Source: Monocercomonoides exilis PA203 (taxonomy: Eukaryota; Protista; Preaxostyla). From it: a stretch of DNA of 64,000 nt. Shown here in pieces: positions 717 through 61,563 of this stretch. Positions within the stretch are counted from its first letter, which is position 1. Each line of letters begins with the position of its first letter. Location: positions 124,001-188,000 of the forward strand of contig LSRY02000045.1 of NCBI GenBank assembly GCA_001643675.2. The letters run 5' to 3'. Under the pieces are notes generated by a model. That model saw only the letters and a program-made list of their open reading frames with translations. It had not been told where the DNA came from and ran no database searches. A program made the translations under genes and the position numbers.

Positions 717-1430
717 TTGGTTTATGCAATCAGATCAAATGAAAACAGAAAAAGCGGAAAGCATGTTGAGAGAAGTTTTGCAGCCTGAAGCAAACATGGC
801 ACACAGCACCCTCTGAGGGGTGCGACCCTATCCTTGAGGTGGTACGGGTGCTGAGCCTCTGGGGTGTCTGGGAAATGGGGCAGCGATTAATCGGCCAGAT
901 GGCTGTGCCTGCACATGGAACATGTTTGTGATGCCTCTTTCTATGCGCTGTGCCTGCATAGTGTTGTGAGTCAGCTATATGAATGGGCTTGTGGGGCAGC
1001 TTGGTGCCGGTGGGTGTTGTTGTTTGTTTTCAGAATGTTATCTAATCTGCCAGGGTGGTGGAGGTGTGCCATTTTGTTTGCCTCTCGAGGGAGCCGTTAA
1101 CGTGTTACACCTTTTTTATTTCTATTTTTTCGGATTTTATTTCTCAGCAGGGCGCAGCTGGGGATGTTTTGCAACAGAAGAATTTTTCGATGATCCGGGT
1201 TCCTGGGTGGGCCAAAACGGCGGGGAAGGGGATGGGAGCAATGGAAACGGCGATTGGGAGGGGTGCAGCGTGGAGACGATGGGCTGTGGCAGAATTTTGT
1301 TTTTTCACCTCAAAGGCAGTTATTGGCAGCTGTGGCAGCACCAACACAAATACGGATGATTTTATTGAATAACTTCCTTCAGACCTGGGATTTGCCGTTA
1401 TTTCAGCCAGCATAATTATTTCGACTCCAA
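717..1430. repeat. GC-richer about 0.7-kb module fused to the 3' end of every A cassette (also about 7790-8502, 33050-33765, 45610-46330); function unknown
   Basis: Four near-identical copies, seen as recurring MEHVCDASFYALCL and MVEVCHFVCLSRE shadow ORFs. Confidence 0.8.
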
Positions 1431-2889
1431 CTGTCACTCGTCGCACTGAAGACGTTGTTGAAGAGATCGAAAGAGAATTCGTCCCAACCACACTCACTGC
1501 CTTCCCTTTCCCTGTTATTATTATCTCCTTTTCCCCAACACTGATCGTCTTCTCTTCACTCACATGCCTCCCACCCAGCACTGTGATTGTCGAGCTCAGT
1601 TGCGCCATGCTCGACCCCACTGCATGCCCCACGGTCTTGCAAGGTGCAGACTCGCTCATCCCACACAGATTGCTCGAGTCATCTCCACTCACCCCAACAT
1701 ATATTGTTTTGTCCTTCAACCATCCCTTCTTTTCTGTATGTTGAAGGCTATTACCATTATAGCACACTCTCTTCTCATTGCTATTCGTTGTGTATGATTC
1801 AAAGAACGGGTTATTCGAAGAAAAGTGATTGTAATTGTCTTGAAAAAACACATCGTGGCCATATGGAGTGGAATTACTGCAACTGCAATCATGGAAGAAG
1901 AAGAAATAGCAATAAAGGTTGTTGCTTGGAGCTATTTGTTGGTTTGGATTGAAACACAATCCTCCACCATATGACACTGCTGAGCACGAAATAAATTGGA
2001 GGCTCCTCATTTTGAATGCAGTTGGGACACTTTGGCAATACATCCCTCCACCACTTGAATATGTTAGAGAGCACGAAGTGAAGAAACACTCAAACACACA
2101 AGCGCTCTCCCCGTTCCCACTTTCTGTTCCAATACAGGAAGATCCAGAAACTTGAAAAGAATCGAGATAAAGTCCTCCTCCCCAATTACTTGCATTACAT
2201 TTCTGGAATTCGCACCCACTGATCCTGACACATGTTGAAATCGAATAAATGTCAATTCCTCCGCCTTCGTAGTTCTGTGCTGTGCAAGCGTTGAACGAAG
2301 TATTCTCGACCGTAATGGAACGTATTTCATATGCTGTTATTGCTCCTCCGCCATAAAACGCATAGCAGTCGTTGAACGAGCAATGCTTTACAGAAAGTGT
2401 TCCTGATGACAGACCGTATATATTGATTGCTCCTCCATTTGAAGCGCTATCTTCATAATCTTCATTTTCTCCAGTTGTTTTTGACCCATTCCACACACAC
2501 CAAGTGAACGAATTCGCCCCATCATCTGTAATCTTCTGTCTCGCTGGTTTCGATAAATTCCCCTCACTCCCTCCTATTGCGACATTCTGAGAGCGATAGC
2601 ATCCGATAAACGAGGTATTCGAGGCATCCAGGGAAGACGAAGGGCTATTGAGCGAAGGCAGAAGGTTTTATAGAAGGGAATTGACAAAAGATGAAGAATC
2701 TTGTTGTTTAGCTGAGATGTTAGAAAAGACCAAAAGAGAGCGCGATGCAAGGGATATGACGAGCAATGGAAGAATGGATGTGAAGAAATGCAAAAAGAAG
2801 AGAAATGCGTCTCGCCCTCCGAAAGCGCTGTCTCCTTCTTCTCTTTTTATTTTTATCATTGTTGTTGAATGAATTGTTATATTTCTCAA
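1144..2889 (-). pseudogene. Cassette A1: truncated Pmp-like/pectin-lyase-fold beta-helix surface protein; hydrophobic leader separated from the body by an in-frame TAA
   Basis: Repeated FxxC...GG(A/G)(I/L/M) motifs and YVGVSGDDSSNLCGMSESAPCKTVGHAV cap motif. Leader ORF 2668-2889 is in frame with 1144-2496. Confidence 0.75.
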
Positions 2890-4204
2890 ATTTTTATTGT
2901 TAAAATAATAAGACAGTTGATGTTATTGAAACGCATTAGTGGTATTTTTTTTTTTTAATTCTTTTAATTCAAAGCAAATTTTGAGAGTTTCAAAAGCTAA
3001 ATGCCAATGGCCAAGATGCATTCATTCTTTTCTTTGAAGGCACGTTTGGAATCAAAATTTATTGTTTCCTTTTTATTTTATTTATTGAATATGAAAGTGA
3101 ATGAAATGATGAAGATATTTTGGATTAACAACAATCGTTTTTTTGTTTTGTTTGTTTTGTTTTTATCGAAATATTTGAAATATGTATTGATTGAATATTT
3201 GCAGCAAATAGAAATGAATAATACTTTTAATTCGTTTCATTTTCATTTGATAATTTTGAAGCAATATTTTTTATTCTGTAGAATGTTTTTTGAAATCATA
3301 TGTTTTTTCAGAGTGTAAATAATAACAAACTTTTTTATTATTGAAGTGGATAATTCATGTTTAATAATTCTGTCCATTGCAATTATCACAATAACATCTG
3401 TTAAAGATATTCAATAGAGAAAAAATACTTTTCAAATCGAGTAACACTTTTATTTTTTGTGTTCATCTTCTTGTTTCATTTGACAAATTGTCAAACAGAA
3501 TTTTTCGTAAAAAAAATATGATTTCTCCAATAATTGCCCATTCATATCCCAAAAAAAAATTTTTTTTTGCGTTTAATATTTACAAAGAAACCAATAATTT
3601 TGTTCAGATTCATTGTCGTTTCATTTTGTTTTGAAACAGTCATTTACACATATTGCTATTCACATTTGGTAAACTTATCATTCAGCAATGAATAACTTAT
3701 TGTTCAAATTTGGTGAACTTATCATTCGATATTGTTGAACAGATTCTTCCACAAAAATTCACTTATCATTCAGAACCAATAATTTTGAATGTTTTCCAAA
3801 TGAAATAATATTTGTGAGAAACAAATTTTTGTTGAGTACCAGAAAGTGCTGCTAATGTTATATTTTGTCATTTTTTATTTTATTGAAGGGGAAGGTGTCA
3901 TATATTTCAATATTTTGTTCACAATTTTGAGAATATCTAATTTTTCAGAAAATATTTCAAATTGTGAATTCAGTTGTCTAATTTTTTTTGAAAAATTCCT
4001 TTTGTTTAATATTCAAATAATATGCAAATTGATTATATTCATCAAATTTCCGTTTCAACTCACAAAACTTCACATTAATGAATATAATATCATTGTCAAT
4101 TTTTTGTTTTCATAACAGCAATATTTGATGAGTGGGAACAAAAATTTGATCGAAATATGAAAATTTTATTTTATTTGAATACACCATTTATTATTCAAAT
4201 TTGG

Positions 4205-4292
4205 TAAACTTATTATTCAAAATTAATAAACTTATTATTCAAAATTAATAAACTTATTATTCAAAATTAATAAACTTATTATTCAAAATTAA
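4205..4292 (+). repeat. 22-bp tandem repeat x4 (taaacttattattcaaaattaa); mirror copy at about 4926-5013
   Basis: Four exact copies read directly. Confidence 0.95.
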
Positions 4293-6325
4293 TAAAATTG
4301 AGTATTTTTTGAAAAAAAAATTTTGTATTAAGCCTTCCTTTGATTGAGTGTCGAAAAGTGATTAAAATATCATATTCCGTCAATATTCAAAATGCAGATG
4401 AGAAATTGAACCTTTAATTTTTTTATTTGTGAATAAACATGAAAATTTCCGATTTTTCAGAAAAAAATCATCATCATGGAAATCGGATTATCTTTGAATT
4501 ATTTCACCTCACATTGTCAGATTTCACATTATTCATTCAAAAAAATATTGTAGGCATCAATATAAGTTCATGAAAACTTTTTATTTGCACAATCAAATAA
4601 GTCAATAAAAGCACTTTCTTAATTTTTAATTTGTTTTTATCGATCCTCTGGATATATTTAAATGAAAATATAATATCTTTATTGCGTAATGTGAAATCTA
4701 ACAATGTGAGGTGAAATAATTCAAAGATAATCCGATTTCCATGATGATGATTTTTTTCTGAAAAATCGGAAATTTTCATGTTTATTCACAAATAAAAAAA
4801 TTAAAGGTTCAATTTCTCATCTGCATTTTGAATATTGACGGAATATGATATTTTAATCACTTTTCGACACTCAATCAAAGGAAGGCTTAATACAAAATTT
4901 TTTTTTCAAAAAATACTCAATTTTATTAATTTTGAATAATAAGTTTATTAATTTTGAATAATAAGTTTATTAATTTTGAATAATAAGTTTATTAATTTTG
5001 AATAATAAGTTTACCAAATTTGAATAATAAATGGTGTATTCAAATAAAATAAAATTTTCATATTTCGATCAAATTTTTGTTCCCACTCATCAAATATTGC
5101 TGTTATGAAAACAAAAAATTGACAATGATATTATATTCATTAATGTGAAGTTTTGTGAGTTGAAACGGAAATTTGATGAATATAATCAATTTGCATATTA
5201 TTTGAATATTAAACAAAAGGAATTTTTCAAAAAAAATTAGACAACTGAATTCACAATTTGAAATATTTTCTGAAAAATTAGATATTCTCAAAATTGTGAA
5301 CAAAATATTGAAATATATGACACCTTCCCCTTCAATAAAATAAAAAATGACAAAATATAACATTAGCAGCACTTTCTGGTACTCAACAAAAATTTGTTTC
5401 TCACAAATATTATTTCATTTGGAAAACATTCAAAATTATTGGTTCTGAATGATAAGTGAATTTTTGTGGAAGAATCTGTTCAACAATATCGAATGATAAG
5501 TTCACCAAATTTGAACAATAAGTTATTCATTGCTGAATGATAAGTTTACCAAATGTGAATAGCAATATGTGTAAATGACTGTTTCAAAACAAAATGAAAC
5601 GACAATGAATCTGAACAAAATTATTGGTTTCTTTGTAAATATTAAACGCAAAAAAAAATTTTTTTTTGGGATATGAATGGGCAATTATTGGAGAAATCAT
5701 ATTTTTTTTACGAAAAATTCTGTTTGACAATTTGTCAAATGAAACAAGAAGATGAACACAAAAAATAAAAGTGTTACTCGATTTGAAAAGTATTTTTTCT
5801 CTATTGAATATCTTTAACAGATGTTATTGTGATAATTGCAATGGACAGAATTATTAAACATGAATTATCCACTTCAATAATAAAAAAGTTTGTTATTATT
5901 TACACTCTGAAAAACATATGATTTCAAAAACATTCTACAGAATAAAAAATATTGCTTCAAAATTATCAAATGAAAATGAAACGAATTAAAAGTATTATTC
6001 ATTTCTATTTGCTGCAAATATTCAATCAATACATATTTCAAATATTTCGATAAAAACAAAACAAACAAAACAAAAAACGATTGTTGTTAATCCAAAATAT
6101 CTTCATCATTTCATTCACTTTCATATTCAATAAATAAAATAAAAAGGAAACAATAAATTTTGATTCCAAACGTGCCTTCAAAGAAAAGAATGAATGCATC
6201 TTGGCCATTGGCATTTAGCTTTTGAAACTCTCAAAATTTGCTTTGAATTAAAAGAATTAAAAAAAAAAAATACCACTAATGCGTTTCAATAACATCAACT
6301 GTCTTATTATTTTAACAATAAAAAT

Positions 6326-8074
6326 TTGAGAAATATAACAATTCATTCAACAACAATGATAAAAATAAAAAGAGAAGAAGGAGACAGCGCTTTCGGAGGG
6401 CGAGACGCATTTCTCTTCTTTTTGCATTTCTTCACATCCATTCTTCCATTGCTCGTCATATCCCTTGCATCGCGCTCTCTTTTGGTCTTTTCTAACATCT
6501 CAGCTAAACAACAAGATTCTTCATCTTTTGTCAATTCCCTTCTATAAAACCTTCTGCCTTCGCTCAATAGCCCTTCGTCTTCCCTGGATGCCTCGAATAC
6601 CTCGTTTATCGGATGCTATCGCTCTCAGAATGTTGAAGTCAATGGGACTGAAGGGAATCCATCGAAACCAGCGAGACAGCAGATTACAGACAATGGGGCG
6701 AATTCGTTCACTTGGTGTGTGTGGAATGGATCAAGTACAACTGGAGAAAATGACGAATATGAAGATAGCGCTTCAAATGGAGGGGCAATCAATATATACG
6801 GTCTGTCATCGGGAACACTTTCTATAAAGCATTGCTCGTTCAACGACTGCTATGCGTTTTATGGCGGAGGAGCAATAACAGCATATGAAATACGTTCCAT
6901 TACGGTCGAGAATACTTCGTTCAACGCTTGCACAGCACAGAACTACGAAGGCGGAGGAATTGACATTTATTCGATTTCAACATGTGTCAGGATCAGTGGG
7001 TGCGAGTTCCAGAAATGCAAAGTAAGTGGTTATGGAGGAGGACTTTATCTTGTATCTTTTAATGTTTCTGGATCTTCCTGTATTGGAACAGAAAGTGGGA
7101 AAGGAGAGAGCGCTTGTGTGTTTGAGTGCTCATTCACTTCGTGTTCTCTTACAAATTCTTATGGCGGAGGGATGTATTGTGTAACTGTTCCGGCTGCATT
7201 CAAAATGAGGAGCCTCCAGTTTATTTCGTGCTCAGCAGTGTCATATGGCGGAGGATTGTGTTTCAATCCAAACCAACAAATAGCTCCAGACGACAACATT
7301 TATTGCTATTTCTTCTTCTTCCACGATTGCAGTTGCACAACAACTTCCACTCCATATGGGCATGATGTGTATTTTCAAGACAATTACAATCACTTTTCTT
7401 CGAACAACCCGTTCTACGAATCGTATACAACGAATAGCAATGAGAAGAGAGTGTGCTATTTATACAATAGTTATCAGCATACAGAAAAAAAGGGATGGTT
7501 GAAGGACAAAACAATATATGTTGGGGTGAGTGGAGATGACACAAACAATCTGTGTGGGATGAGTGAGGCAGCACCGTGCAAGACAGTGGGGCATGCGGTG
7601 GGGTCGAGCATGGCGCAGCTGAGCTCGACAATCACAGTGTTGAGTGGGAAGCATGTGAGCGAAGGGGAGACGATCAGTGTTGGGGAAAAGAAGATTTCTG
7701 TTGTTGGGAGAGGGAAGATGGTGAGTGTGATTGGGACGAATTCTCTTTCGATCTCTTCAACAACGTCTTCAGTGCGACGAGTGACAGTTGGAGTCGAAAT
7801 AATTATGCTGGCTGAAATAACGGCAAATCCCAGGTCTGAAGGAAGTTATTCAATAAAATCATCCGTATTTGTGTTGGTGCTGCCACAGCTGCCAATAACT
7901 GCCTTTGAGGTGAAAAAACAAAATTCTGCCACAGCCCATCGTCTCCACGCTGCACCCCTCCCAATCGCCGTTTCCATTGCTCCCATCCCCTTCCCCGCCG
8001 TTTTGGCCCACCCAGGAACCCGGATCATCGAAAAATTCTTCTGTTGCAAAACATCCCCAGCTGCGCCCTGCTGA
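6326..8074 (+). pseudogene. Cassette A2: truncated beta-helix surface protein, palindromic partner of A1
   Basis: Same motifs as A1. TAA at 6545-6547 is followed in frame by NLLPSLNSPSSSLDASNTSF... into ORF 6719-8074. Confidence 0.75.
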
Positions 8075-8502
8075 GAAATAAAATCCGAAAAAATAGAAAT
8101 AAAAAAGGTGTAACACGTTAACAGCTCCCTCGAGAGGCAAACAAAATGGCACACCTCCACCACCCTGGCAGATTAGATAACATTCTGAAAGGAAACAACG
8201 ACACCCACCGGCACCAGACTGCCCTACAAGCCCACTCATGCAACCCCACCACAACATTTTGCAGGCACAGCGCATAGAAAGAGGCACCACAAACATGCTC
8301 CATGTGCAGGCACAGCCATCTGGCCGATAAATCGCTGCCCCATTTCCCAGACACCCCAGAGGCTCAGCACCCGTACCACCCCAAGGATCGAATCACATCC
8401 CTCAGAGGATGCCGTGCACCGTGTTTGCTTCAGGCTGCAAAACTTCTCTCAACACGCTTTCCGCTTTTTTCTGTTTTCATTTGATCTGATTGCATAAACC
8501 AA

Positions 8503-11500
8503 TTCCTCTATCTATTAAAAAAGTATTTTTTTTTGTAATTGTCAATATATTTTTAATAATATTTATAAAGAAGAAAAATGCCATTTCCCCTGGTTTCTGT
8601 GTCCAGACTCCCCCAAATCCATTTTCTCAGCCTTCACAAAAGAATTCATTTGCCCTGGCTCCTTCACAAAGGCAATAATGTGTATTCATTCCCTTGCATT
8701 TTTTCACACAGGGGAATGTCACTCAAACAGACAGATAAATAAATATGTTTTGAATGAAACTGAGCGAAAAAGAAATCAACAATGTGAATGAAAACAAAAC
8801 AGAGAATAATGTGCTTGAAATTTCTCTGAAAAATTACAAAATAATTTTTTTGTGAATTTTGAAAGACATTTTCAATACCTTCATGCATATCACAATTCAA
8901 ATGCCCCCTTTCCTTCATCTTCCTTCTCTTGTTCCAACAAGCTCCACACCCTCCCAATGTTCTCCATTTCCCTCTTCTTTCCTCTCCCTTCCAAAAATAC
9001 AACTGCCCCTCAACCTCACTCAACAAACACATCTGCTCCATGGGGCATATGCCCATCCAGCATCCTTTCTTCAGCTTCATCTTCACCCCCCTCCGACAGC
9101 CTGCCACTCATCATCCTCTCTCATTTTTTCTGTCTGCATTTCCCAACTTTTCTGCTCCGAAACACACAGCTTCTGTCACCTCCATCAGCATTGCCAACAA
9201 CCTTGCTGAGCGTGGAATCATCACACCCACAACCACTCCTCACCCCATTTCATTTGCCCAGCCACACCATCTTCTCTTCACCTTTCTTCTTCCTTCTTCC
9301 TCCTCCCTTTCCATTCCATTCCATCTCAATCCCATGCCTCTCTGCTTTTCTTCTTTCCTTCTCCCTTCCAAACACCCCTCCAAGCAGACTGCCAACTGCC
9401 CCTTCCATCGCCTTCCTCTTCCTCTTCCTCTTCCTCATTGCAAAACAGACACATCTCCATCACACCCAACAACATTCATCCCCCCTCTTTTTGCTCATTC
9501 ACAGGCACACATTCCCCCAAAACACAAATATCAAAAGGGAATACCAAAGACAATGCAACCTCCTCCACACACATTTTCCAAAGTGATGGATGATGATCAG
9601 CCACACCACAAGACAAACAACAACTCATATAAAAAAATGATTAATAAATCAATTTTCACTTCTTTCCTTCCCTTCGCAAACTGAGTTTCATCCATCAATC
9701 CTCCTTGCTCTTTCACCATCATTCCCCTCTGCTCCCTTCTCCCAACTCGTTCTGAACGAGACATCTCATTCCTCCATCACCCTCAAAACTCTCCAGTTTC
9801 TCCATTCTCCACAAATGCATCCTTCCTATTTTCCCAGATGTCTGATTGCAAAAGAAAACAAACTGCATTAGCCAGCCCCACCATTTCTATCAGGAAAAGC
9901 TTCTCTCCATATCCTCAAATACAGTTTAAGAACCCATCACTCATTTCAAATGGAACACACATTTGAATTGAGACTTGTGAGATGGACAAAGAATGTGTAT
10001 CCTGCTCAAAATCCACTCAGGCACACCAATTGATATTTCAATCCTTGTTCAGTTCAAAGAACTTCTTTGACAATCCCTCTCAAAAAATATCCATCTTGTT
10101 GTCATCCCTTTTGCCTCATGCCCAAGGCTTCATACACAAACAGATTCAAAATAATTCCTCTGCTCATTTTACGCCTTTTGCATTATCTCTTTTCCCCATC
10201 ACTTTCCATGGACACACAACCCTGATGATCACCAAAGTGCTCACGTGATTGGACTTTCTGACTCCAATTCAAATGCTAAACGCTTCGTGATATTTCCTTC
10301 CACAAACAACAACAAAACAAATAGACTGATAAACAATCCTTGTTCCTTCTGATTGATTGATTCACACACTGAGATCAGATGGATTTTTCCAATAATGTTG
10401 ATGAAGATAACACTTCGAAACAGGGGATGGCGATGATGGAATGGCAGAAAAAGAAAAATTTCACAGCAAGCTTAGTGACATTTCAGTCGAAGAATAATAC
10501 CTTTCAAATACAAGAAAAACATCTTGTTTTGTCTCTTTGGGTGGTTGAGGGATGTTGATCCAATTTCCCAGATCGAGTATTGGAGAATATGAAGAAGAAG
10601 AAAACACGTTTGAAAACATGGAAAGCGAATATGATTCACGAAGGAAAAAGTGAATTTTGATGGATGAATATTGTCCATTTGCATATGCTTTGAACTTCAC
10701 AATAAAATTGAGAGATAACACAAATATGAGAAGAATGACAGAATTGTCCAAGAGTGCAACAATGTTGTGACATGACCAAAGCAAGATTTGGTGATTTTAT
10801 TCCTTTTTATTCACTTTTCAATAAAATACCATTTATTCAGGAGATTGGCAGGATATGTTGCAATCCAGTGCTGAATGATAAATAAATACATTGTCGACAT
10901 TTTCTCCCTCTAATTATCTCATGCTCATCATGAGCACCAGACAGCTGCCAAAAGTTTGAAATCAATTTCTTTTCTGCTCATTTGGCACTCAAACAACAAG
11001 AATTGGCAAGGTTATTGAGCTGCCCCACAAACAATCCCCTGTCCCCATTTCTCTTCCAGCCTCTGCCCTTTCAACCAAAATGCTTCAAATTGAATCCTCT
11101 TTCATTCATCAATCTCTCTAATCTGTTATGGAAAATGATCAAAGTTAAATGATAAAAAAACTGTCAACAGAATGGGAAATCAAGACGTCAAACATTCCAG
11201 CTGGGATGAGTGAATTATTTTTTTGTGATATGGCAGATGAGACAACAACAATTTTATTATGAGGGAAGCTGGAATTATTCTTTTTGATTGTTGGAGAACT
11301 GTCAAGCCATGACATTTTCGATGGAAATGAAGAATTTTCAATGTATGCATTTTATATTATTCTATTGATTGTGAAGATATTTCCATCCATATCCTCTCCT
11401 AAGTCGTGATTCAGACAAATTATATTTAAAATGGATGATTTGTGCTAAACAGAGCAGAACAGCGAGGAAGCGAGGCAAATGTTATTTTACAAATATATTG

Positions 11501-12280
11501 GAATGTGAATGCATTTTGTTACAAATGTTTATGTTACTTATTTTGGATTCAACATGTGGCATATGGAAATACGATGAATAATGAAAATTAATAGAGCAGA
11601 AATCAACGGGGTTGGAAGATGTCCAAGACAAAAAGGAAGAATGTCCAATCTCTATGAAAAGGAAGCACCTTTTGAGGATGAAGAGGACATTTTCAAAAAA
11701 AGCATTGTAAGAAAAATTGAGTCAGATGACTGAAACAGGTGATTGAAATTGGTTGAGACAGAGCAAGGCGCCTTTCTTGGGATGAGAAGGGCAAGACATT
11801 GATTTTATGGACCGGGGGGAGCGATGGAACAGCATTTGATTGCTTGGCTTGAGAGGCGAAAATAAGAGGAAAACAGACAGTTTTGCGTAATACGGCAGCT
11901 GGAGGCAAATTACAGGCAAAATGGATCCGAATCATTTAACACTCGCCTTTGGCATTGTGTCGTCGATGGGTTATCCATTGAAGCAGAGAACGAGGTTATG
12001 ATGCTGAAGATATCTTCTGACAGAAGATATATAGTATTCAAACTTGACAATAACATCGCCGTCATCATCTTTATCATCTTCATCTCTATCATTGCCATCA
12101 TTGCTGTCATCGTCTTCTTCCTCTTCTCCATCTTCATCTCTTTCATCTACTTCATTTCCTTCATCGAATTCTTCTCCTTCATTGTTTTCATATGCACCTC
12201 CTCGACAAATGAAATTTTGTATTTTTACCTTCTTGGCCATTATCATTTTCTTCTTCTTCTTCTTCTTCTTTATCTTCATC
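8503..12280. repeat. Filler block B (decayed, frameshifted coding-like DNA); homologs at about 29315-33050 (inverted) and 46330-50050 (direct)
   Basis: Recurring broken ORFs (e.g. 8852-9586+, 31799-32689-, 46711-47469+; 11693-11935-, 29653-29880+). Confidence 0.85.
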
Positions 12281-14138
12281 AAATCAGGAGCAAAGCCGCC
12301 TTTACAGCTCCGAATTCAAAACCGCGTTCACTCCGCCAAATGCAGCTCTGCACAATATTCAGAGTAATTCGCCGTAATTGTCTTCTTTATTGCTGACTTC
12401 GAAATGAACCGAATTGATTTCTTTGTATTTTATCATGTGCGAGGATTAGTTTCTTGCTTCCTGCCAGAAAGAGACAAAATTCATTCTCGTCCGAAATATC
12501 ATTACGCGTTTTTGAACCATCAACAACTTTCAGCAAAGATTAAACTTCTTCTTCTGTTCCACTGTCATCGTCGTTATCTGTTCAACTTCGACCACTGGCT
12601 CTGCCTGCTGCTGCACACAGTTCAATTGCCTTGCTTCTGTGGGACACTTCTGAGACAGAATTGGCATTCTGCGAGTGCAGCATCCCGAACAACAACATGA
12701 AGCCGATGAGCAACGAGGAAGACGCATGAATCAATCGTTTGATGGGAAGGGAAAGAGAAAGAGTGATCGATGAAAGAGGTGCAAGAGATGGAGGCCAAGA
12801 AAGAGATCGAGATAAAAGAACAGAGACCTCCGTTCCAATTACCATCATCGACAAAAGCATCAAGGACAACGACAATCAGCAGAAAGGGTTCTTCCATGCC
12901 AGTGCGGCATATGGAATTTGTTTGTATTCTGGTTCATTATTCTCTGTCAAAGGCTCCTCCTCCTTCTCTTAGAAGGCAGCGAGCAGCACACTCCCAACTT
13001 CCTCATGTTCCGAAAAATCGTATGAAGTATTTCGCTCATGCTGGTCATTCAGGCGCTGCTGCTTTTCTTTTTCCGTCCACCTCTCTGCCTATTTGCAGTG
13101 CTTCCTCAATGCTGATGCAATGCAATCTTGCGAATCTCTTCTTCTGGTTGTTGGGCTACTCTTCACAGAAAGGCAGTTGCGCTTTCTTTCTCACTTCAGC
13201 CTCCTCAACACACACTCCACCAACTTGTCCCACAACCCCTCTCTCTTTCTCTTCAAGATGAAACTGAAAGAGTGAACGCACTTGCCGAACTCATGACAAG
13301 GAACCACGACATCGTTCTTCAATCATCGTTCTTCACACAATAGATCGACGCCATTTTATAACCGTTTCCATCCACTTTGTCTTCGATCAACGCTCTTGCT
13401 CCGCTTGTGCATTTCGAAGCACATGCATTTTAATCCTCTTCTGTCTTTGTCATTGCTCGCCCCGCAGCTGATATCCACACCTCCAGTTCCTGTTCCAATC
13501 TGCTGCACTCTTTTCCGAGCTCCGCTGACCTCCTAACTTGCACCTTCGTGCCTTCGCTGTCTGCTCCCTTCGACAAAGCACTCCAGCTTTTGAGGCTGTG
13601 CGGAATCAACGAGCAGTTCATGATCGCTCTCTCCACTTTCTTCTTCTGCCAGCTCGTCACACTTTTTTTCTGGTGAGAAGCTCTCTGCAACAGCAGCTCA
13701 TTCTTCCTTTTCGCTGTTTTCGTTCTCTTTGTCCATTTAGCCAGATGTCGAAAGCATTTCCGAAGTGTCTGGTTTGTGGGGCATACATTTTTCTTCTCTG
13801 TTTTATCCTTCTTTTCTCACTTCTCTTCTCTCAACCAAGCGTCTCCTTCTTCTTCCTCTTTTCCTTCCAACTTTCTTTCTCTTTCTCTTTCTCTCTCTCT
13901 ATCTCTTTCTCTCTTTCTCTCTCTCTACGCCAAACATATGCAATCATCCGATGTGTTTTTTGTTGTCCTCGAACCAAACATCTCCAATGCGCCTGGTGAT
14001 AGTCAATCATTTCAAACAGATCATTCTGGTGAATGTTAACTCGTTCGCCTCTCCTTGGCACACACTCCGATTTCTCTCTTTTTCGAAGCAAGACCTGCTG
14101 CTCATCAAAGAACTCCGCATTTCGCCCATCCGTTTTCA

Positions 14139-37560: not shown

Positions 37561-37662
37561 AAGAGAAGAAATTGAATGTTTGTTTTCTTTTCTAATTAAA
37601 ATGCATAACATTTTCATTGTCAAGAAAACTTCCATTCAATTTCTTCTCTTCTTGTTGAGAGA
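37561..37662. other. Internal complementary region (ICR) of the DIRS element
   Basis: 37561-37595 matches the element 3' terminus (3 mismatches). 37622-37662 matches the 5' terminus exactly. A 26-nt linker lies between them. Confidence 0.88.
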
Positions 37663-37667
37663 AAAAC

Positions 37668-41808: not shown

Positions 41809-41821
41809 TTTTGATCACGAA

Positions 41822-41895
41822 AAGTGACATGACTCATAAAGTGGCATCTCTCTCAACAAGAAGAGAAGAAATTGAATGGAAGTTTTCTTTTCTAA
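41822..41895. repeat. 5' inverted terminal repeat of the DIRS element
   Basis: aagtgacatgactcataaagtggc...gttttcttttctaa. Confidence 0.92.
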
Positions 41896-43225
41896 TCAAA
41901 ATCCAGTCTCTTTCAAATTATCATTTATCGTTGTCATCATTATCGTTTGTTGATTTGAGATTTGGGTGATTTCTTTTTGACATCACACTTTTTCAATCAT
42001 AAGAATTCGTTTCGATAAATCAATTTGAATAGCATGAAGATGAAACCAAACAGAACCATTGATGAGTTTCTATTTGTTTTCAGATTGTTGTTTTTCAGTT
42101 GTTTTCAATGATTCAATAATTGATCATTTCAATCCACTGAACATTTCATTGCAATCTGTTAGACCCAATGATAGAATGTTGGTTATTATTGGAGAACAGA
42201 ATTTTCATTTTTGATTTCAAAAATACTCACCCATTTTCAAGAGTTAATCTCAAAACACAAATTCATTTTGACTTTTGTTTTGAAATTTGAGGTTATTGAT
42301 GGACTGTTTTTCATATTTGATATTGCACAATGATTCAACAATTTTTTAATCTTTATGAATGAACTGAAACGTCTTTTTCTTTAATGTTTCTTTTTGTATT
42401 TTCTTGATTGATAATATGAATTAATCTTGAAATCATTGGAGTAAAGAGCTTATTTCATTTATATTTGATTAAGAATTATATTCGTTTATTATTGTAAAAA
42501 TTCAATGATACACATATTAATGGATTTTGTTTTGCATTAAAGAAAAAAAATACATGTGCTATTTGAAGTGATGTTAATCGTTATTTCAATTCAGTTTTTT
42601 TAATGAAATCAATATTCAAAAAAAAAAAAAAAAGAAAAGAGAAATTGGAATTTCATTTAAACGTTAAAAACAAATATCCAAATGATCACTCAGAAAAATA
42701 CAAAAAGAAATATTTTAGAAAAAGAAGATGTTCCAGTTCATTCATAAAAGGAAAAAACTGTTGAAAAATTGTTCAAAATAAAACACTAAATAGTTGATGA
42801 TTCTCATCAAATTTCAAAATGAATGTCAAAATGAAATTGGATTTTGAGATTAACTCTTGAAAATGGGTGAGTATTTTTGAAATCAAAAATGAAAATTCTG
42901 TTCTCCAATAATAACCAACATTCTATCATTGGGTCTAACAAATGGCAATGAAATGTTCAGTGGATTGAAATGATCAATTATTGAATCATTGAAAACAACT
43001 GAAAAACAACAATCTGAAAACAAATAAAAACTCATCAATGGTTCTGTTTGGTTTCATCTTCAGGATCATCAAATTGATTTATCGAAATGAATTCTTATGA
43101 TAGAAAAAGTGTGATGTCAAAAAGGAATCACCCAAATCTCAAATCAACAAACGATAATGATGACAATAATAAATGATAATTTGAAAGAGGCCAAATTTTG
43201 ACAATCAAATTACTGAATAAATAAA

Positions 43226-52399: not shown

Positions 52400-54780
52400 A
52401 AGAAGGAAAAGAAAACGATTGCGATGGAAATGACAACATCGATGAAAATGAAGGAGGAGAAATGGAAGGATCGATCAGACAAGATGCACACGCAGAGGAC
52501 AGCCGCAAGTTGTTGATTGTCAATTCTTTGCAATTCAGAAGATGTTTGTGCTGTGCTGAAGAAGCAGATGCTGCTGATGCATGACAAGACATTGACTCCT
52601 CTCCCCCTCCCTCGCTCTGCCGTGCCATTGGCTTGCGAAACAGCTCCACACGCTGCCCGTTCCCCAGCAGCACCCCCAAAGCAGATTGGCCGACCAACCT
52701 CGTTCGCTCTGCAGCTGCCTCCACGAGCTGCACCAGCATCATCACCATCCGGAACAGCACCCACAGCCGACTGCACCAGCATCAACACTTCGATTCAGCC
52801 CTGCCCCCGTTGACACACACGAAAGCACCTGCACCTGATCGTCCAGCGCAGGCTGACTGTCTTCACAACTGAGCTGTTCTGTGACAGGAAAAGAGGAGAT
52901 CTGCAGCTGGCAGCATCACACACATCTGGATGCATCAGGCACAGTGTGAAGAAATCGTTGGTCTGGAACACCTTCAGCACCGATGCAAACGATGGCAGAA
53001 AGCACCTAGACAGATGGGATGCATCTCAGAAGAATTGTTGCGACAGCGCCTGTGGCGTCTGTGGATAGCACACACACAGAAGAGATTCCATCTCTGAATT
53101 TGTGATACACCTAATATCGTTGACGAAGAAATCAATGCATCCCCAGAACATATGGCATCATACAGCTCCATTATCGTCTCCTTTCATCATTTTTTCTTCT
53201 GCCCAGTTGTTATTCAGCAGAATCCCCAGAGACACAGACGCATCTGCCACTCCCATCTTTGACTGTATCTTCTCGAACTCCACCAAAAAACATCTTGATC
53301 TTCTTCTCCGCTCCTCTTTCAAGCACGATATCAAAGAACAAGAAGAGCGACAGCTTGTCTTCGTTGAACTCCTCCCTCACAAACCTCCCAAACAGCCACA
53401 TCTCTGCAATGTTCCACTAGAATAGCTTCTCCCCCGTGGATCATCACCTTCCTGATTGCCTCGCTCTTCTTCTGATTCTTAATCGCCTCCTCGAATAGCG
53501 CCTTCTGCTCTCAGATCGTCTGCTCCTTCACTTTCGGAAGTTCCATCAGCATCTTCATTTTCCTTCTCCGTCTCGTTCGTCTTCTGCTGCGCCGTTGCGT
53601 CTGCTCTTCCACCACCTCCTCCACCTCCGCTGTTTGCTTCTCCCACAACACTCACCCCGCTCCCCACTTTTGCAACAACCTCCTTCCCATTCAGGTCTGG
53701 CCCAAGCATCACAGCACTTCCATTTTTGTTGATCTCTGTTAACTTCTCCTGGCACTTTTCACAAAGCCCCAACGGCAGAATCAACAAAGCCAAAGATGGA
53801 ACAATTCCATTATACGCACAAATTAATGAAGAAGATATGGCAATTGTAACCACCGACCAGCTAGTTTCCACTTGCCATCCACGCTCACCACTCCTCCTTG
53901 CTGTGCCTAGCACTTCTTCTCCTTCACCTGCTTCACCTGCTTCACCTCTGTGTTGTGCTTCTCGCTCAGCTCCAGAATCTTCCTCTGATTCATCCAGATG
54001 ATCTTGCCCTTCTCCTGCAGCTGCTCTGCCAACCCGCTCATCCGCTTCGCCTCCTTTTCCTTTCCAACTTCTTCTTCTTCTTCTTCTTCTTCTTATCTTT
54101 CTTCCAGCAAATTCGGCACAATCGCTGCAGGCGACAGAACCACATCTTCCTTCATCAGCCCCTCTGCCCCACCGCCTCCAGCGCCTTCTCCGCAAACTCT
54201 CCCACTTCATTCACTGCAACCTTTCGCCTCCTCATTTTGTTGACCAGCTTCATCACTCTGCATGCCTCGATTGCTTCTATCGGTTCTTTAGCCATTCAAT
54301 GGCCGATGAAGCCAGCGATGGATCAGGCGGATTGCAGATTGGCAGGAACGCAACCACGTCTACTGCTGTTAATAACTGCTTCTTCGACGACTTCTTTCTC
54401 GGCAAGTCCTCAAGAAACGGGAGCATAGCCAGAAGTGGAATGGAAAGCATCACACATTGAGCGGACACAGCACGTTCTGTTCAGCTGGGCGCAGCAAGCC
54501 AACATTGAAACCTCGGAGTGCTTTCAGCAGTGAGTGAAGTGATTGAAGTGATTGCGAAGATGAAAGCGACAACAACCCGGCTGCCTCGGGCACGTCAATC
54601 CTTAGCCACCTCACGTTGTGGTGCAGTTTTTTGTCTTTAATGTGAGATGCAGCCACAGCCGATTCATCTGAAGGGTCGACTGCGGGTGCCAATTATGATG
54701 ATGGCCATTCGTCTCCTTTGCTCCTCCGCTGCATGAAAGGCGAAGCGGCGTGGCGTGATGTTTCAGATGTTTCAGATGAA
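52400..54780. pseudogene. GC-richer decayed gene fragments (mirrored at about 62300-64000)
   Basis: Broken ORFs on both strands; absent from the first repeat unit; no family recognised. Confidence 0.3.
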
Positions 54781-55511
54781 GAAGAATGAGATGAAAGAAA
54801 ATTGAATATTAGATTTTTGAGGGATGTTTGAAGATGAGTTAAGAGAAAGGGAAGAAAGATGAAAGGAGAAAGAGGTTTTGGTAAAAAATAGAGGTGATTA
54901 GCTTTTGTGAGGAAGAATACAGATAATTTGGAGAAAATTCTAAAAAGAAGATGGGGATAGGCTCCAGAATATTTATCTTAATGGACGGAGGTTGCAAAAT
55001 GTTTTGTTTTTGCCGGAGATGAGGGAAGGGATGAGGAAGCAAGGAATGCAGCGATTCTTTGAGAAAAGTGGGCGAGAGAAAAGGAAAACAAAGGTATGAC
55101 ATTTTTATTGGTGATATTATTTGACCTATTTTTAATATGATTTATTGTTTTTCTTTTTATTTGTTTGAACAAAATTGTTTTTGCTGGCGTTTTCGTAAAA
55201 CTTCAAGGGAGTGAAATTACATCAAACGATAGAAAGTGAAGGTCAATGGTGGAATTAGCTTGGGAAAGAGCTTTATAGGATCATAGTTATAAAAAGGAAT
55301 TGGCAGCGAAGGTCTGTTATATTTTTTTTATGAGATTCATTACATATGCAGCAGAAAGAGGGAGGGAAAGGGTTGTAGAATAATTTGAGTTTTTGATGAA
55401 AATTGTATTGAGAGGGATGGTGCAGACGAGAAGTGGGAGAGAGGTGAAGGAAGAGGAAGTGAAGGAAGAGAAGAAAAAAGAGAAGAAGAAAGTGAAGGAG
55501 GAGGGAGTGTA

Positions 55512-57275
55512 TTGGTGAGCGAGTCAGATTTCTCATCTTTTTGTGTGTCTTCAGCCCCGTTTCTGGCACCTCCATTGACACGCCTTGTATCTCTCACCCA
55601 GCTGACCTTCTTCAACATCTCGACAAATCCACTGAAAACAACACATCTGGCTGAAGGGCCGAGCCAAACCTCGTTTCTGATGAGTGGATGCGCATTTTCA
55701 TCGGTGTGGGATGTTTATGATGGGGGCATTGTCCCCTCGCTCAACAGCCCCTCATCTTCCCTGGATGCCTCGAACACCTCGTTTGTCGGATGCTATCGAT
55801 CACAGAATGTTGAAGTCAGCGGGAGTGAAGGGAATCCGTCGAAGCCAGGGAGACAGCAGATAGCAGACAATGGGACGAATTCGTTCACTTGGTGTGTATG
55901 GAATGGGTCAAATACAACTGGAACAAACTCTGGTTATTCTTATGGAGATTCAAATGGTGGAGCAATTTACATGTATAGCAAGACATCAGGAACACTTTCA
56001 GTGAAATTTTGTTCGTTCAATGATTGCTATGCATATTATGCTGGGGGAGGAATTATGTGCCGTTCGATCAGTTCAATAAATATTGAGAACAATTCATTCA
56101 ATGCATGCACTGCTCAAAAAGATTACGGAGGAGGGATGTATACTTATTCGATTTCGTCATGTGTCAGGATCAGTGGGTGCGAGTTCCAGAATTGTAAAGC
56201 AAGTGCTTATGGAGGAGGACTTTATCTTAATTCTTTTAATGTTTCTGGATCTGGCTGTATTGGAACAGAAAGTGGCAAAGGAGAGAGTGCTTGTGTGTTT
56301 GAGTGCTCATTCACTTTGTGCTCTGTTTCAGGTTCTTATGGCGGAGGGATGCGATGTTATGGCGTTCCAGCTGCATTCAAAATGAGGAGCCTCCAATTTA
56401 TTTCGTGCTCAGCAGTGTCATATGGCGGAGGATTTTGGTTTAATCCAAACCAACAAACAGCTCCAAGCAACAACCTTTATTGCTATTTCTTCTTCTTCCA
56501 CGATTGCAGTTGCAGTAATTCCACTCCATATGGCCACGATGTGTATTTTGTAGATAATAAGAATCTCTTTTCATCGAATAACCCGTTCTACGAATCGTAC
56601 ACAACGAATAGTGATGAGAAGAGAGTGTGCTACAGCGGAAATAGCCTTCAACATACAGAAAAGATGTGGTGGCTGAGCGTAGGGATGAAGGATCGGTATG
56701 TTGGGGTGAATGGGAATGATTCGAGCAATCTGTGTGGGATGAGTGAGTCTGCCCCGTGCAAGACGGTGGGGCATGCAGTGAGTTCGAGCATGGCGCAGCT
56801 GAGCTCGACAATCACGTTGCTGGATGGGAAGCATGTGAGTGAAGGGGCGACAATCATTGTTGGGGAAAAGAAGATAATAATAACAGGGAAAGGGAAGACA
56901 GTGAGTGTGATTGGGACAAGTGCGCTTTCTTCGCCTGCAACTACTCTGTTCAGCATATCTTCTGGTCAACTGGAGGTGGGGCATGTGGGGATCGATCACA
57001 ACGCGACAAGAAGCCCATCACCAAGTGTGTTTGTGGTGTCGCTGGGGAGCGGGGCTCTTTCGCTGGAGGATGTTGTGATCGACTCTTCGACATCAGGAGG
57101 GAGTGGAATCTCGTCATCTGTGTTTGAAGTGGCTCTGAAGCAATTGAAGGCGATTGATGTGGAGGTTGAAAACATGAAAATGAGCCGACTTCTGATTGTT
57201 GAACCATCATCAACAGGACAACATTGGGAGAAAATTGGTTATCAAATGTTTTGTTTTGTGTTCATGGCACGCTGA
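55512..57275 (+). CDS. Cassette C3: 5'-truncated beta-helix surface-protein ORF
   Basis: Homologous to C1 from VSESDFSSF onward. Confidence 0.75.
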   Translation: MVSESDFSSFCVSSAPFLAPPLTRLVSLTQLTFFNISTNPLKTTHLAEGPSQTSFLMSGCAFSSVWDVYDGGIVPSLNSPSSSLDASNTSFVGCYRSQNVEVSGSEGNPSKPGRQQIADNGTNSFTWCVWNGSNTTGTNSGYSYGDSNGGAIYMYSKTSGTLSVKFCSFNDCYAYYAGGGIMCRSISSINIENNSFNACTAQKDYGGGMYTYSISSCVRISGCEFQNCKASAYGGGLYLNSFNVSGSGCIGTESGKGESACVFECSFTLCSVSGSYGGGMRCYGVPAAFKMRSLQFISCSAVSYGGGFWFNPNQQTAPSNNLYCYFFFFHDCSCSNSTPYGHDVYFVDNKNLFSSNNPFYESYTTNSDEKRVCYSGNSLQHTEKMWWLSVGMKDRYVGVNGNDSSNLCGMSESAPCKTVGHAVSSSMAQLSSTITLLDGKHVSEGATIIVGEKKIIITGKGKTVSVIGTSALSSPATTLFSISSGQLEVGHVGIDHNATRSPSPSVFVVSLGSGALSLEDVVIDSSTSGGSGISSSVFEVALKQLKAIDVEVENMKMSRLLIVEPSSTGQHWEKIGYQMFCFVFMAR

Positions 57276-59799
57276 CTGAAGAGAGAGAGAAAATAGAAAT
57301 TCTGAGATTAACTTTTTATTATCTTTTTTATTAAAGTATCAGGTGATGGAGTGTTATTTTTTTATTGAGAGTGCATGGCTTAACGGAAACGATTATTTTT
57401 TAATGAAAATGGTTTGTTGATAAAACTTTTGTGGATGCATGAAAAGATGGAATAAATGAAAAAGCCACCAAAAACAATGATTTTATCATAAATTATTAAT
57501 GAATTCAAATATTTGTTTTTTTTTAAAACAAATTATTCAAAAAATGATTGTTATTTGAACATTCTGATAAAAAAGTTTCAAAATATTTGAAAATAGAAAC
57601 AAAAATCGAAAATGCTTTAATTATCAAGAATATTGTATTTATCAACAGTTATGATATATCAGTCACTTTAGATTGCAATGATAATAAAATTATCATAGAT
57701 TTATATATGAGTTGCTTTTGTTTTCTGATGATTAAAAATCATGAACACCACAGATAATCTTGTTTCAATGAGTGTATTATTGTGAAGTTATTAAATATAT
57801 TCGAAGTCTGAAAATCAAATTATTTTCATTCATTTTTTGAAAAGAATAAACTTGAGATAGGAGAAGGATCAGTGTCAAATTATTTATTGGGATCTGTATT
57901 TTTCTTCAAAAATTTGTTCAAACAAACATTTGTTCACAAATGGGTGATTATTCTTGAAATCAAACAATCTTTCTGGGAGTGAATTATTTCCATTATTCAC
58001 TTTTCAATGAAGTTATTTGTATTGAATTGAAATTGACACAATGAATGGTGATGAACAATAAATGTGATATTTTTTCCTTATTGAAAGTCAATTGATGTTG
58101 TTTTCCACAAATCATTAAAAATCTGAATTGATTGACAGAACGTGTCTGATCTACAAAAAATAGAATAGCCTGGACAATACCTTCCTCAAGCAAATGAATC
58201 ATTGTTGGAATAGTATCAATAATATATCTTTTGAAAAAGACATTTGATCTTGAAACACTCTTCTCTTGCTGTTTTCTCAATGATAATTAGTTGTTGAGTC
58301 TTTTCATCTCAAACAAACATTTTGAAACATTTTTCTTCTTGATCCTTATTCCTTATTTTCAGATGTCTCAACAAAAGTTGAGAAAGCAGTAAATTGGGAA
58401 AGAATTAGAATAACGAACTGAAGAGGAAAGATGGATGGGCATTATTATTTATGGAAAGATACATGTATATATATAAATTTTAAAAATACTTGTTGTGAAT
58501 ATTTAAAATCTTCTTTGTTCCTAAATATTCAAATGTCTCAATTAATCAGCAAAAACATAAAATTATTCCAAAAATGAAAATGATTTCAATTCACATTTTG
58601 AATATTGAAATGAATATTTGTTTTTTTTTGTAAAAAATGCCCATCCCTCTTTCCTCTTCAGTTTGTTGTTCCAATTCTTTCCCAATTTACTGCTTTCTCA
58701 ACTTTTGTTGAGACATCTGAAAATAAGGAATAAGGATCAAGAAGAAAAATGTTTCAAAATGTTTGTTTGAGATGAAAAGACTCAACAACTAATTATCATT
58801 GAGAAAACAGCAAGAGAAGAGTGTTTCAAGATCAAATGTCTTTTTCAAAAGATATATTATTGATACTATTCCAACAATGATTCATTTGCTTGAGGAAGGT
58901 ATTGTCCAGGCTATTCTATTTTTTGTAGATCAGACACGTTCTGTCAATCAATTCAGATTTTTAATGATTTGTGGAAAACAACATCAATTGACTTTCAATA
59001 AGGAAAAAATATCACATTTATTGTTCATCACCATTCATTGTGTCAATTTCAATTCAATACAAATAACTTCATTGAAAAGTGAATAATGGAAATAATTCAC
59101 TCCCAGAAAGATTGTTTGATTTCAAGAATAATCACCCATTTGTGAACAAATGTTTGTTTGAACAAATTTTTGAAGAAAAATACAGATCCCAATAAATAAT
59201 TTGACACTGATCCTTCTCCTATCTCAAGTTTATTCTTTTCAAAAAATGAATGAAAATAATTTGATTTTCAGACTTCGAATATATTTAATAACTTCACAAT
59301 AATACACTCATTGAAACAAGATTATCTGTGGTGTTCATGATTTTTAATCATCAGAAAACAAAAGCAACTCATATATAAATCTATGATAATTTTATTATCA
59401 TTGCAATCTAAAGTGACTGATATATCATAACTGTTGATAAATACAATATTCTTGATAATTAAAGCATTTTCGATTTTTGTTTCTATTTTCAAATATTTTG
59501 AAACTTTTTTATCAGAATGTTCAAATAACAATCATTTTTTGAATAATTTGTTTTAAAAAAAAACAAATATTTGAATTCATTAATAATTTATGATAAAATC
59601 ATTGTTTTTGGTGGCTTTTTCATTTATTCCATCTTTTCATGCATCCACAAAAGTTTTATCAACAAACCATTTTCATTAAAAAATAATCGTTTCCGTTAAG
59701 CCATGCACTCTCAATAAAAAATAACACTCCATCACCTGATACTTTAATAAAAAGATAATAAAAAGTTAATCTCAGAATTTCTATTTTCTCTCTCTTCAG

Positions 59800-61563
59800 T
59801 CAGCGTGCCATGAACACAAAACAAAACATTTGATAACCAATTTTCTCCCAATGTTGTCCTGTTGATGATGGTTCAACAATCAGAAGTCGGCTCATTTTCA
59901 TGTTTTCAACCTCCACATCAATCGCCTTCAATTGCTTCAGAGCCACTTCAAACACAGATGACGAGATTCCACTCCCTCCTGATGTCGAAGAGTCGATCAC
60001 AACATCCTCCAGCGAAAGAGCCCCGCTCCCCAGCGACACCACAAACACACTTGGTGATGGGCTTCTTGTCGCGTTGTGATCGATCCCCACATGCCCCACC
60101 TCCAGTTGACCAGAAGATATGCTGAACAGAGTAGTTGCAGGCGAAGAAAGCGCACTTGTCCCAATCACACTCACTGTCTTCCCTTTCCCTGTTATTATTA
60201 TCTTCTTTTCCCCAACAATGATTGTCGCCCCTTCACTCACATGCTTCCCATCCAGCAACGTGATTGTCGAGCTCAGCTGCGCCATGCTCGAACTCACTGC
60301 ATGCCCCACCGTCTTGCACGGGGCAGACTCACTCATCCCACACAGATTGCTCGAATCATTCCCATTCACCCCAACATACCGATCCTTCATCCCTACGCTC
60401 AGCCACCACATCTTTTCTGTATGTTGAAGGCTATTTCCGCTGTAGCACACTCTCTTCTCATCACTATTCGTTGTGTACGATTCGTAGAACGGGTTATTCG
60501 ATGAAAAGAGATTCTTATTATCTACAAAATACACATCGTGGCCATATGGAGTGGAATTACTGCAACTGCAATCGTGGAAGAAGAAGAAATAGCAATAAAG
60601 GTTGTTGCTTGGAGCTGTTTGTTGGTTTGGATTAAACCAAAATCCTCCGCCATATGACACTGCTGAGCACGAAATAAATTGGAGGCTCCTCATTTTGAAT
60701 GCAGCTGGAACGCCATAACATCGCATCCCTCCGCCATAAGAACCTGAAACAGAGCACAAAGTGAATGAGCACTCAAACACACAAGCACTCTCTCCTTTGC
60801 CACTTTCTGTTCCAATACAGCCAGATCCAGAAACATTAAAAGAATTAAGATAAAGTCCTCCTCCATAAGCACTTGCTTTACAATTCTGGAACTCGCACCC
60901 ACTGATCCTGACACATGACGAAATCGAATAAGTATACATCCCTCCTCCGTAATCTTTTTGAGCAGTGCATGCATTGAATGAATTGTTCTCAATATTTATT
61001 GAACTGATCGAACGGCACATAATTCCTCCCCCAGCATAATATGCATAGCAATCATTGAACGAACAAAATTTCACTGAAAGTGTTCCTGATGTCTTGCTAT
61101 ACATGTAAATTGCTCCACCATTTGAATCTCCATAAGAATAACCAGAGTTTGTTCCAGTTGTATTTGACCCATTCCACACACACCAAGTGAACGAATTTGC
61201 CCCATTGTCTGTAATCTGCTGTCTCGCAGGTTTCGACGGATTCCCTTCACTCCCGCTGACTTCAACATTCTGTGATCGATAGCATCCGACAAACGAGGTG
61301 TTCGAGGCATCCAGGGAAGATGAGGGGCTGTTGAGCGAGGGGACAATGCCCCCATCATAAACATCCCACACCGATGAAAATGCGCATCCACTCATCAGAA
61401 ACGAGGTTTGGCTCGGCCCTTCAGCCAGATGTGTTGTTTTCAGTGGATTTGTCGAGATGTTGAAGAAGGTCAGCTGGGTGAGAGATACAAGGCGTGTCAA
61501 TGGAGGTGCCAGAAACGGGGCTGAAGACACACAAAAAGATGAGAAATCTGACTCGCTCACCAA
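59800..61563 (-). CDS. Cassette C4: palindromic partner of C3
   Basis: Identical to C3 except 3 residues in one patch. Confidence 0.75.
   Translation of the reverse strand: MVSESDFSSFCVSSAPFLAPPLTRLVSLTQLTFFNISTNPLKTTHLAEGPSQTSFLMSGCAFSSVWDVYDGGIVPSLNSPSSSLDASNTSFVGCYRSQNVEVSGSEGNPSKPARQQITDNGANSFTWCVWNGSNTTGTNSGYSYGDSNGGAIYMYSKTSGTLSVKFCSFNDCYAYYAGGGIMCRSISSINIENNSFNACTAQKDYGGGMYTYSISSCVRISGCEFQNCKASAYGGGLYLNSFNVSGSGCIGTESGKGESACVFECSFTLCSVSGSYGGGMRCYGVPAAFKMRSLQFISCSAVSYGGGFWFNPNQQTAPSNNLYCYFFFFHDCSCSNSTPYGHDVYFVDNKNLFSSNNPFYESYTTNSDEKRVCYSGNSLQHTEKMWWLSVGMKDRYVGVNGNDSSNLCGMSESAPCKTVGHAVSSSMAQLSSTITLLDGKHVSEGATIIVGEKKIIITGKGKTVSVIGTSALSSPATTLFSISSGQLEVGHVGIDHNATRSPSPSVFVVSLGSGALSLEDVVIDSSTSGGSGISSSVFEVALKQLKAIDVEVENMKMSRLLIVEPSSTGQHWEKIGYQMFCFVFMAR

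Follow-up and report, generated by a model that had tools for sequence, protein, structure and literature searches.

Incomplete gene copies feed segments to functional genes in the case of the trypanosome VSG pseudogenes and the chicken immunoglobulin (Ig) pseudo-V genes, exchange within plant NLR/LRR-kinase clusters reshuffles exposed repeat-solenoid residues across many expressed genes, and in the palindromes of the mammalian Y chromosome arm-to-arm conversion preserves the near-identity of two arms that flank a short unique loop. In the vls system, partial variable-region cassettes are kept open in an array with inverted repeats nearby (PMC11499132), and the vsp genes of Giardia form head-to-head and tail-to-tail inverted pairs 2-4 kb apart, with recombination among the members (PMC2996952). 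Here we compare with these systems an array in Monocercomonoides exilis, lying in a window of 64,000 nucleotides (C42:124001-188000, the contig being called C42 here), in which eight paralogous open frames of one beta-helix family are arranged as four palindromes, as a first-pass annotation had proposed. Judged by sequence, the eight frames are predicted to be head-only fragments of single-pass beta-helix receptors with a kinase-like tail. That annotation had missed that the copies are truncated receptor-kinase-like heads and that complete genes show the same head-focused turnover. Our literature searches found no paper describing a head-only palindromic cassette system.

The assembly comprises 82,301,135 bases in 101 contigs, and was obtained by nanopore sequencing and polished with Nanopolish and ten rounds of Pilon (PMC8767320). 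DNA-level comparisons cover the window and 30 loci of 4.2 kb (designated by L numbers), and coordinate-only searches cover the rest; frame lengths are those of unspliced open frames rather than of joined spliced models. Read evidence consists of the assembled contigs of three DNA runs (one from 2016 and two from 2022, one sample) and an RNA run, aligned to positions 18851-24850. All named close homologs of the window frames are M. exilis proteins.

Palindromes, head cassettes and imported tracts

The window contains the following palindromes, cassettes and shared tail.

683-8534: palindrome A1/A2, head-to-head, 94.8% alike overall, with identical AT-rich inner arms and a 121-nt loop (4549-4669)
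14135-29325: palindrome C (C1/C2), tail-to-tail, 97.9% alike, 73-nt loop (21698-21770)
29606-49756: palindrome A3/A4, head-to-head, older, 89% alike, spacer enlarged by a DIRS-like retrotransposon
53076-64000: palindrome C3/C4, tail-to-tail, 98.8% alike, running past the window end, 186-nt loop (58447-58632)
1144-2667, minus strand: cassette A1, 507 amino acids, head-only, core 1446-2658, no methionine before the core and no signal peptide
6548-8074, plus strand: cassette A2, partner of A1, core 6557-7772
7772-12085, plus strand: tail common to the A types, coding match to the receptor confined to about 200 bp of remnant, patch-converted among A-type copies
18187-20427, plus strand: cassette C1, 746-amino-acid frame, N-terminal part of the receptor without signal peptide, ending about 100 amino acids past the core
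23036-25273, minus strand: cassette C2, partner of C1
33732-35159, minus strand: cassette A3, protein identical in both annotation sets
44360-45646, plus strand: cassette A4, protein identical in both annotation sets
55389-57275, plus strand: cassette C3, matched by MONOS_15443
59800-61686, minus strand: cassette C4, partner of C3

No signal peptide is found in any of the eight copies, A2 and A4 share with A1 the lack of a methionine ahead of the core, and no stalk, membrane span or kinase lies within the window. The frame ends of the short cassettes are not conserved, and a Pfam search returned nothing in the heads or in ten flanking frames.

In three of the palindromes, the differences between partner arms are concentrated in the head. 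A1 and A2 differ at 114 of 1,213 head sites and at 0 of 1,856 inner-spacer sites, C1 and C2 at 94/1,478 head and 1/4,758 spacer sites, and C3 and C4 at 8/1,196 and 0/4,025, which pools to 216/3,887 (5.6%) in the head versus 1/10,639 (0.009%) elsewhere. The same patch pattern recurs in pairs outside the window (L007/L008, L014/L020 and L013/L015). The first-pass description of near-identical arms with differing patches in the coding segment thus applies to A1/A2, C1/C2 and C3/C4; it does not extend to A3/A4, the exception, whose arms are just 89% alike throughout, nor does it account for the outer tails of A1/A2, which also differ in patches. The individual patches, together with a tract in A1 that matches a cassette pair on contig C80, are as follows.

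18965-19101, plus strand: C1/C2 patch, 21 differences, C2 counterpart 24359-24495
19476-19734, plus strand: C1/C2 patch, 53 differences, C2 counterpart 23729-23984
55844-55898, plus strand: C3/C4 patch, single, 55 bp, 8 differences, counterpart 61177-61231
2391-2581, minus strand: A1 tract, 190/191 bp identical (exact run 210 bp) to both arms of the C80 cassette pair

Segmental gene conversion takes place among non-partner paralogs, as had been suggested: 36 of the 378 non-partner pairs share identical runs beyond chance (Bonferroni p<0.05; 28 non-redundant cores, mean identity about 82%), and trees of four head segments reject one another (approximately unbiased [AU] test, p<=0.0007). All ten instances of peptide sharing and the three invariant blocks listed in the annotation were recovered exactly as written. 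Non-partner copies have exact tracts of 200-430 bp in common, also with counterparts on other contigs and with stalk-bearing genes; the longest tract measures 431 bp. Since both C80 arms match the A1 tract and A2 is 92% identical across it, A1 is the likely recipient. A4 shares a 322-bp exact run with another C42 cassette, crossing the core end. The two large C patches (256-259 bp) have no single donor in the assembly (best match 88-89%) and contain 45-84-bp exact pieces of several paralogs; they may be a multi-donor mosaic, or their donor may be missing from the assembly.

Two old truncation events, an A type and a C type, were copied as whole palindromic units into the array on C42, as follows from the distribution of their boundaries. 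The C-type junction occurs 23 times in the genome, 74-100% alike and mostly in convergent pairs on C42, and the A-type tail about 15 times in arrays, mostly in divergent pairs, in addition to partial dispersed hits. Palindrome C3/C4 is 81% alike to palindrome C in its spacer as well as in its coding part, and the unit was therefore duplicated as a whole. Decayed exon remnants, 61-73% alike with indels, flank the A types on both sides; those around A2 are receptor remnants 64-67% alike to a stalk-bearing gene, again with indels. A signal-peptide reading of the A-type leader was rejected, the leader being a decayed piece of receptor exon, and G-quadruplex (G4) motifs were dropped as a trigger, as they do not mark all cassettes and the A types have no G-rich leader. 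Pieces of the A-type tail (window 8100-9000) adjoin dispersed, often stop-containing head fragments on C91, C23, C37, C25, C29, C7 and C80, which suggests that the head-plus-tail unit has been mobile.

Several further observations concern the palindromes themselves. Inside the core, A3 (33912-34454) and A4 (44924-45466) are identical over about 550 bp despite their 89% arms, the mark of a recent arm-to-arm conversion across the inserted element. This DIRS-like retrotransposon (37356-41905, minus strand) is flanked by duplicated spacer pieces and has reverse transcriptase, RNase H and a Dam-like methylase in 39098-41284, a tyrosine recombinase in 37671-39176, short terminal repeats and an internal complementary region (37561-37662). 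In one contig of a DNA run, positions 21349 and 22124 are connected through 29 other letters, giving a shorter palindrome centre that may belong to a related palindrome or a deletion variant. A whole A-type palindrome (L003-L006) is nearly identical at C42:1855-16413, near the contig start, and at C80:1896559-1911099, near the end, and may reflect either a subtelomeric duplication of recent date or two overlapping contigs that were left unmerged. Equal-scoring inverted pairs are also formed genome-wide by complete or long receptor genes (e.g., on C5, C32, C52 and C53), so palindrome formation is not confined to cassettes.

Receptor heads and their turnover in complete genes

Full members of the family are single-pass proteins of 2,000-4,400 amino acids with an N-terminal beta-helix head, a stalk and a kinase-like tail. 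Long relatives of 2,000-2,900 amino acids have one membrane span, and two of them (P0131 and P0132) combine a signal peptide, a long ectodomain and one span with a partial kinase match, which covers the C-terminal third of PF07714 only. The window copies align to about residues 150-790 of the long proteins, within the N-terminal 400-700 residues only, and these long single-pass relatives support the earlier proposal of a surface receptor in a protist with cassette-like truncation. The membrane-plus-tail part has at least 82 strong, near-complete matches, mostly in frames of about 2,500-4,200 amino acids. The 108 best head matches divide into 61 short and 47 long frames, with at least 35 frames of 2,000 amino acids or more, and long genes are interspersed within the cassette array. 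Searches gave 642 candidates for the head and 221 for the stalk; as there are several types of stalk, these counts are not taken as a ratio of cassettes to genes.

The expected beta-helix fold is supported by an AlphaFold model of the head, a right-handed parallel beta-helix with a predicted local distance difference test score (pLDDT) of 73.6 (29 for a single-sequence model). Structure comparison gave a Z score of 18.3 over 246 aligned residues at a root-mean-square deviation of 4.2, with only beta-helix proteins in the top rows (beta-helical glycosidases and tailspikes); a Foldseek search with the same model returned nothing significant. A shared beta-helix fold would not by itself indicate a function. 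A distant beta-helix repeat relative, P0170 (2,484 amino acids), is found in Streblomastix strix; the repeat is oxymonad-wide, while the close head family is seen only in M. exilis.

Variation within the head follows the coil register. All six coils have their entropy maxima at the same places, namely positions +4, +6 and +7 and the three residues just ahead of the Gly-Gly-Gly turn, and the variable sites consist of 25% Tyr, 16% Ser and 12% Asn, in agreement with the clustering near the turns that had been noted before; given this register, the variable residues may form one face. The ratio of non-synonymous to synonymous differences (pN/pS) at variable sites lies between 0.68 (local pS) and 0.94 (global pS) versus 0.17-0.29 for the framework, as pairwise counts on recombining data. 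These values do not exceed 1; the variable sites thus appear relaxed or diversified, and positive selection is not demonstrated. Private changes in cassettes comprise 36 synonymous and 22 non-synonymous substitutions.

Heads turn over faster than stalks, and cassettes exchange with stalk-bearing genes. L011 (a 3,163-amino-acid frame) and L016 show 0 substitutions over 1.5 kb of stalk and about 14% in the head, the divergence spanning from the head start to approximately where many cassettes end, and the L017 stalk is 98% identical to those of L011 and L016, with a head identity of 86-87%. L016 in turn shares a 431-bp exact run with cassette L025, and both arms of L013/L015 share a 297-bp exact run with a long gene on C37, a tract most simply explained as cassette-to-gene transfer. 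Exact runs of at least 100 bp occur in 7 of 84 pairs of a C cassette and a long gene versus 0 of 83 cassette/cassette or long/long pairs within these two classes (p=0.014, on pairs that are not independent). Patches are present in stalks, too, at lower density.

Explanations for the head-only arrays

On balance, we read the array as a de facto variant reservoir that acts through multidirectional gene conversion, with no targeted switching machinery and no single expression site. A DNA break in a head copy would be mended by homologous recombination, with the partner arm or one of hundreds of paralogs as the template, and tracts of 50-430 bp would result. Such tracts are observed; the repair route is suggested by the reported absence of non-homologous end joining (NHEJ) from M. 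exilis, in which homologous recombination and mismatch repair are present (PMC6759080), so that recombination would be the ordinary route both to tracts and to palindrome upkeep. Exchange among cassettes and complete genes would run in all directions, with cassettes also receiving, and head-only cassettes would add donors for the head only. Since cassettes cover just this part, complete genes would have their ligand-facing tip reshuffled while the stalk stays unchanged; this pattern is seen here, and cassettes are its presumed main donors. They might, moreover, be net donors that are kept for this role. Stops in the head occur in 0 of 53 short array frames versus 5 of 8 dispersed ones (p=1e-5, among best-scoring copies, a list biased to high scorers), and the array frames are open although the non-coding junctions are 74-86% alike and the flanking remnants decayed; they are probably kept readable by refreshing and selection.

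A number of points weigh against this reading. Non-coding A tails share exact runs as well (A1/A3, 231 bp; A2/A4, 221 bp), and 28 of 33 alleles in the A-type tail of L006 are common to another pair; homology and the number of donors thus govern the process, which does not target the head. The cassette-to-gene direction is given by parsimony in one or two cases only. The L016 and L017 frames are broken (947 and 1,887 amino acids), with no membrane span or kinase seen at these two loci; the stalk identity could have arisen by homogenisation instead of by a duplication of recent date. Passive refreshing at a high rate could by itself preserve the array frames, RNA contigs suggest some transcription of truncated cassettes (with DNA carry-over in the RNA library possible), and the DNA-level analysis covers 33 of several hundred copies.

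Whether the head-only palindromic arrays go further and constitute a selected donor library, giving new ligand-binding tips to hundreds of receptor kinases, is a tentative idea toward which we lean less than toward the de facto reservoir. If true, such a library would serve a commensal oxymonad in recognition (its targets being prey bacteria, glycans, phage or host molecules) and not in immune escape. It would diversify an entire receptor-kinase repertoire in a manner not described before, and the organism, a protist that can be cultivated, would allow the idea to be tested. The system also accounts for some of the "unclassified repeats" that make up 35% of the M. exilis genome and that overlap with the tyrosine-kinase-like genes, reported as the largest family (PMC8767320). 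It further shows frequent ectopic conversion between copies only 80-88% alike, in a eukaryote for which mismatch repair, but no NHEJ, has been reported, and the palindrome arms serve as a built-in clock, in which conversion imports differences several hundred times faster than point mutation.

The reservoir may instead be a passive by-product, in which truncated duplicates were amplified with the palindromes and stay readable solely through overwriting by hundreds of functional heads at a pace above that of mutation, with little contribution to expressed diversity and no selection. We regard this as unlikely, although it is the best of the competing explanations. The conversion of the non-coding tails and the pN/pS values are in line with it, and there are at least some ten times as many head donors as spacer donors (23 C-type junctions), an excess that could explain the contrast between head and spacer. 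It accounts less well for the decay of dispersed short copies but not of array copies, for the retention of the same head by independent truncation types, and for the surplus of long tracts that link C cassettes to long genes.

It is more doubtful still that the short frames act as independent, expressed genes, encoding soluble or cytosolic lectin-like proteins or family-regulating RNAs, e.g., hairpin RNA from convergent arms, which could yield complementary RNAs. The frames are intact and annotated, and the inverted vsp pairs of Giardia are complete genes (PMC2996952). At low depth and with one difference (20406), a contig of the RNA run extends across the C1/C2 stop into 115 bp of the tail (20368-20542), and RNA contigs cover the coding parts, with none over the spacer beyond 20650. 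Against this stand the lack of signal peptides in all eight copies, the three frames without a methionine before the core, the unconserved frame ends and the possible DNA carry-over already mentioned.

We give very little credence to dedicated, programmed antigenic variation of the vlsE/msp2 kind, in which, within the lifetime of a clone, silent cassettes would pass one-way tracts to a single expression site or a small number of them. Head-only cassettes whose frames are preserved in arrays, variable blocks between constant ones and the long genes interspersed in the array would fit such a scheme, and the first-pass annotation had named vlsE, VSG and msp2 as analogues. This part of its interpretation is not supported, given hundreds of complete genes (with the near-complete membrane-plus-kinase tails and long frames counted above), cassettes that are recipients, converted non-coding tails and a pN/pS of 0.7-0.9. 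In addition, C1/C2 are unchanged between the 2016 and 2022 runs, and M. exilis is considered a commensal (PMC6759080).

Finally, both palindromes and patches are confirmed as real rather than as products of polishing. Contigs of the three DNA runs show no conflict with the C1/C2 coding sequence, the alleles of both arms and the centre of palindrome C are represented in read contigs, and in two runs a contig lies inside a C1-specific patch (19518-19605). Arm-specific contigs near the centre have a depth of about 95 versus about 200 for arm-shared ones in run X2, as a rough figure only. The EukProt set, whose gene count suggests an origin in the older 454 assembly, contains proteins identical to those of A3 and A4, and its C3/C4 protein combines one allele from either arm, as expected from collapse of the pair. 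An artefact, in which fold-back nanopore contigs and ten Pilon rounds with mis-mapped paralog reads created the palindromes and patches, is conceivable from the way the assembly was made and from the caution its authors voice about multi-copy regions (PMC8767320), but is scarcely credible in view of these contigs, their depths, the agreeing older proteins and the large patches without a single donor.

Comparison with known systems

At the level of the fold, the heads resemble the chlamydial and trichomonad Pmp adhesins, whose coils are built from Fxx(C/N) and GG(A/G)-hydrophobic motifs (PMC11166332). The same coil motifs and a right-handed beta-helix (Z 18 to beta-helix proteins) are present here, but with FxxC instead of the FxxN that accompanies GGA(I/L/V) in Pmp repeats, no Pfam Pmp match, no autotransporter barrel and a kinase-like tail. 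With the vsp genes of Giardia, the array shares inverted pairs of surface-protein genes in a metamonad; those pairs, however, are complete, mostly identical and subject to epigenetic switching, whereas the M. exilis pairs are truncated and differ by imported tracts. In contrast to the mammalian Y palindromes, the arms are kilobases long, hold truncated genes and carry tracts imported from paralogs 80-88% identical. Plant NLR/LRR-kinase clusters are not known to use head-only palindromic arrays, and the comparison with them and with the VSG and Ig systems, which have one active locus and regulated transfer, is one of anatomy.

A close parallel is with vls and msp2, which likewise have partial cassettes of a variable part in an array, short segmental tracts, constant and variable blocks, and preserved frames. 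Yet vls has one expression site and one-way transfer, while M. exilis has hundreds of complete genes, so that no single site exists at the gene level, and its cassettes receive tracts: partner arms differ by imported segments, and the A1 tract matches the C80 pair. Each cassette is also doubled in a palindrome, and the target would be a receptor whose tail is kinase-like, in a eukaryote that lives as a commensal. Taken together, the anatomy is that of vls or of a pseudogene archive, with the single expression site and the one-way transfer lacking, and the array, if it were indeed a selected library, would be a germline, many-to-many counterpart of the vls or pseudo-V archives.

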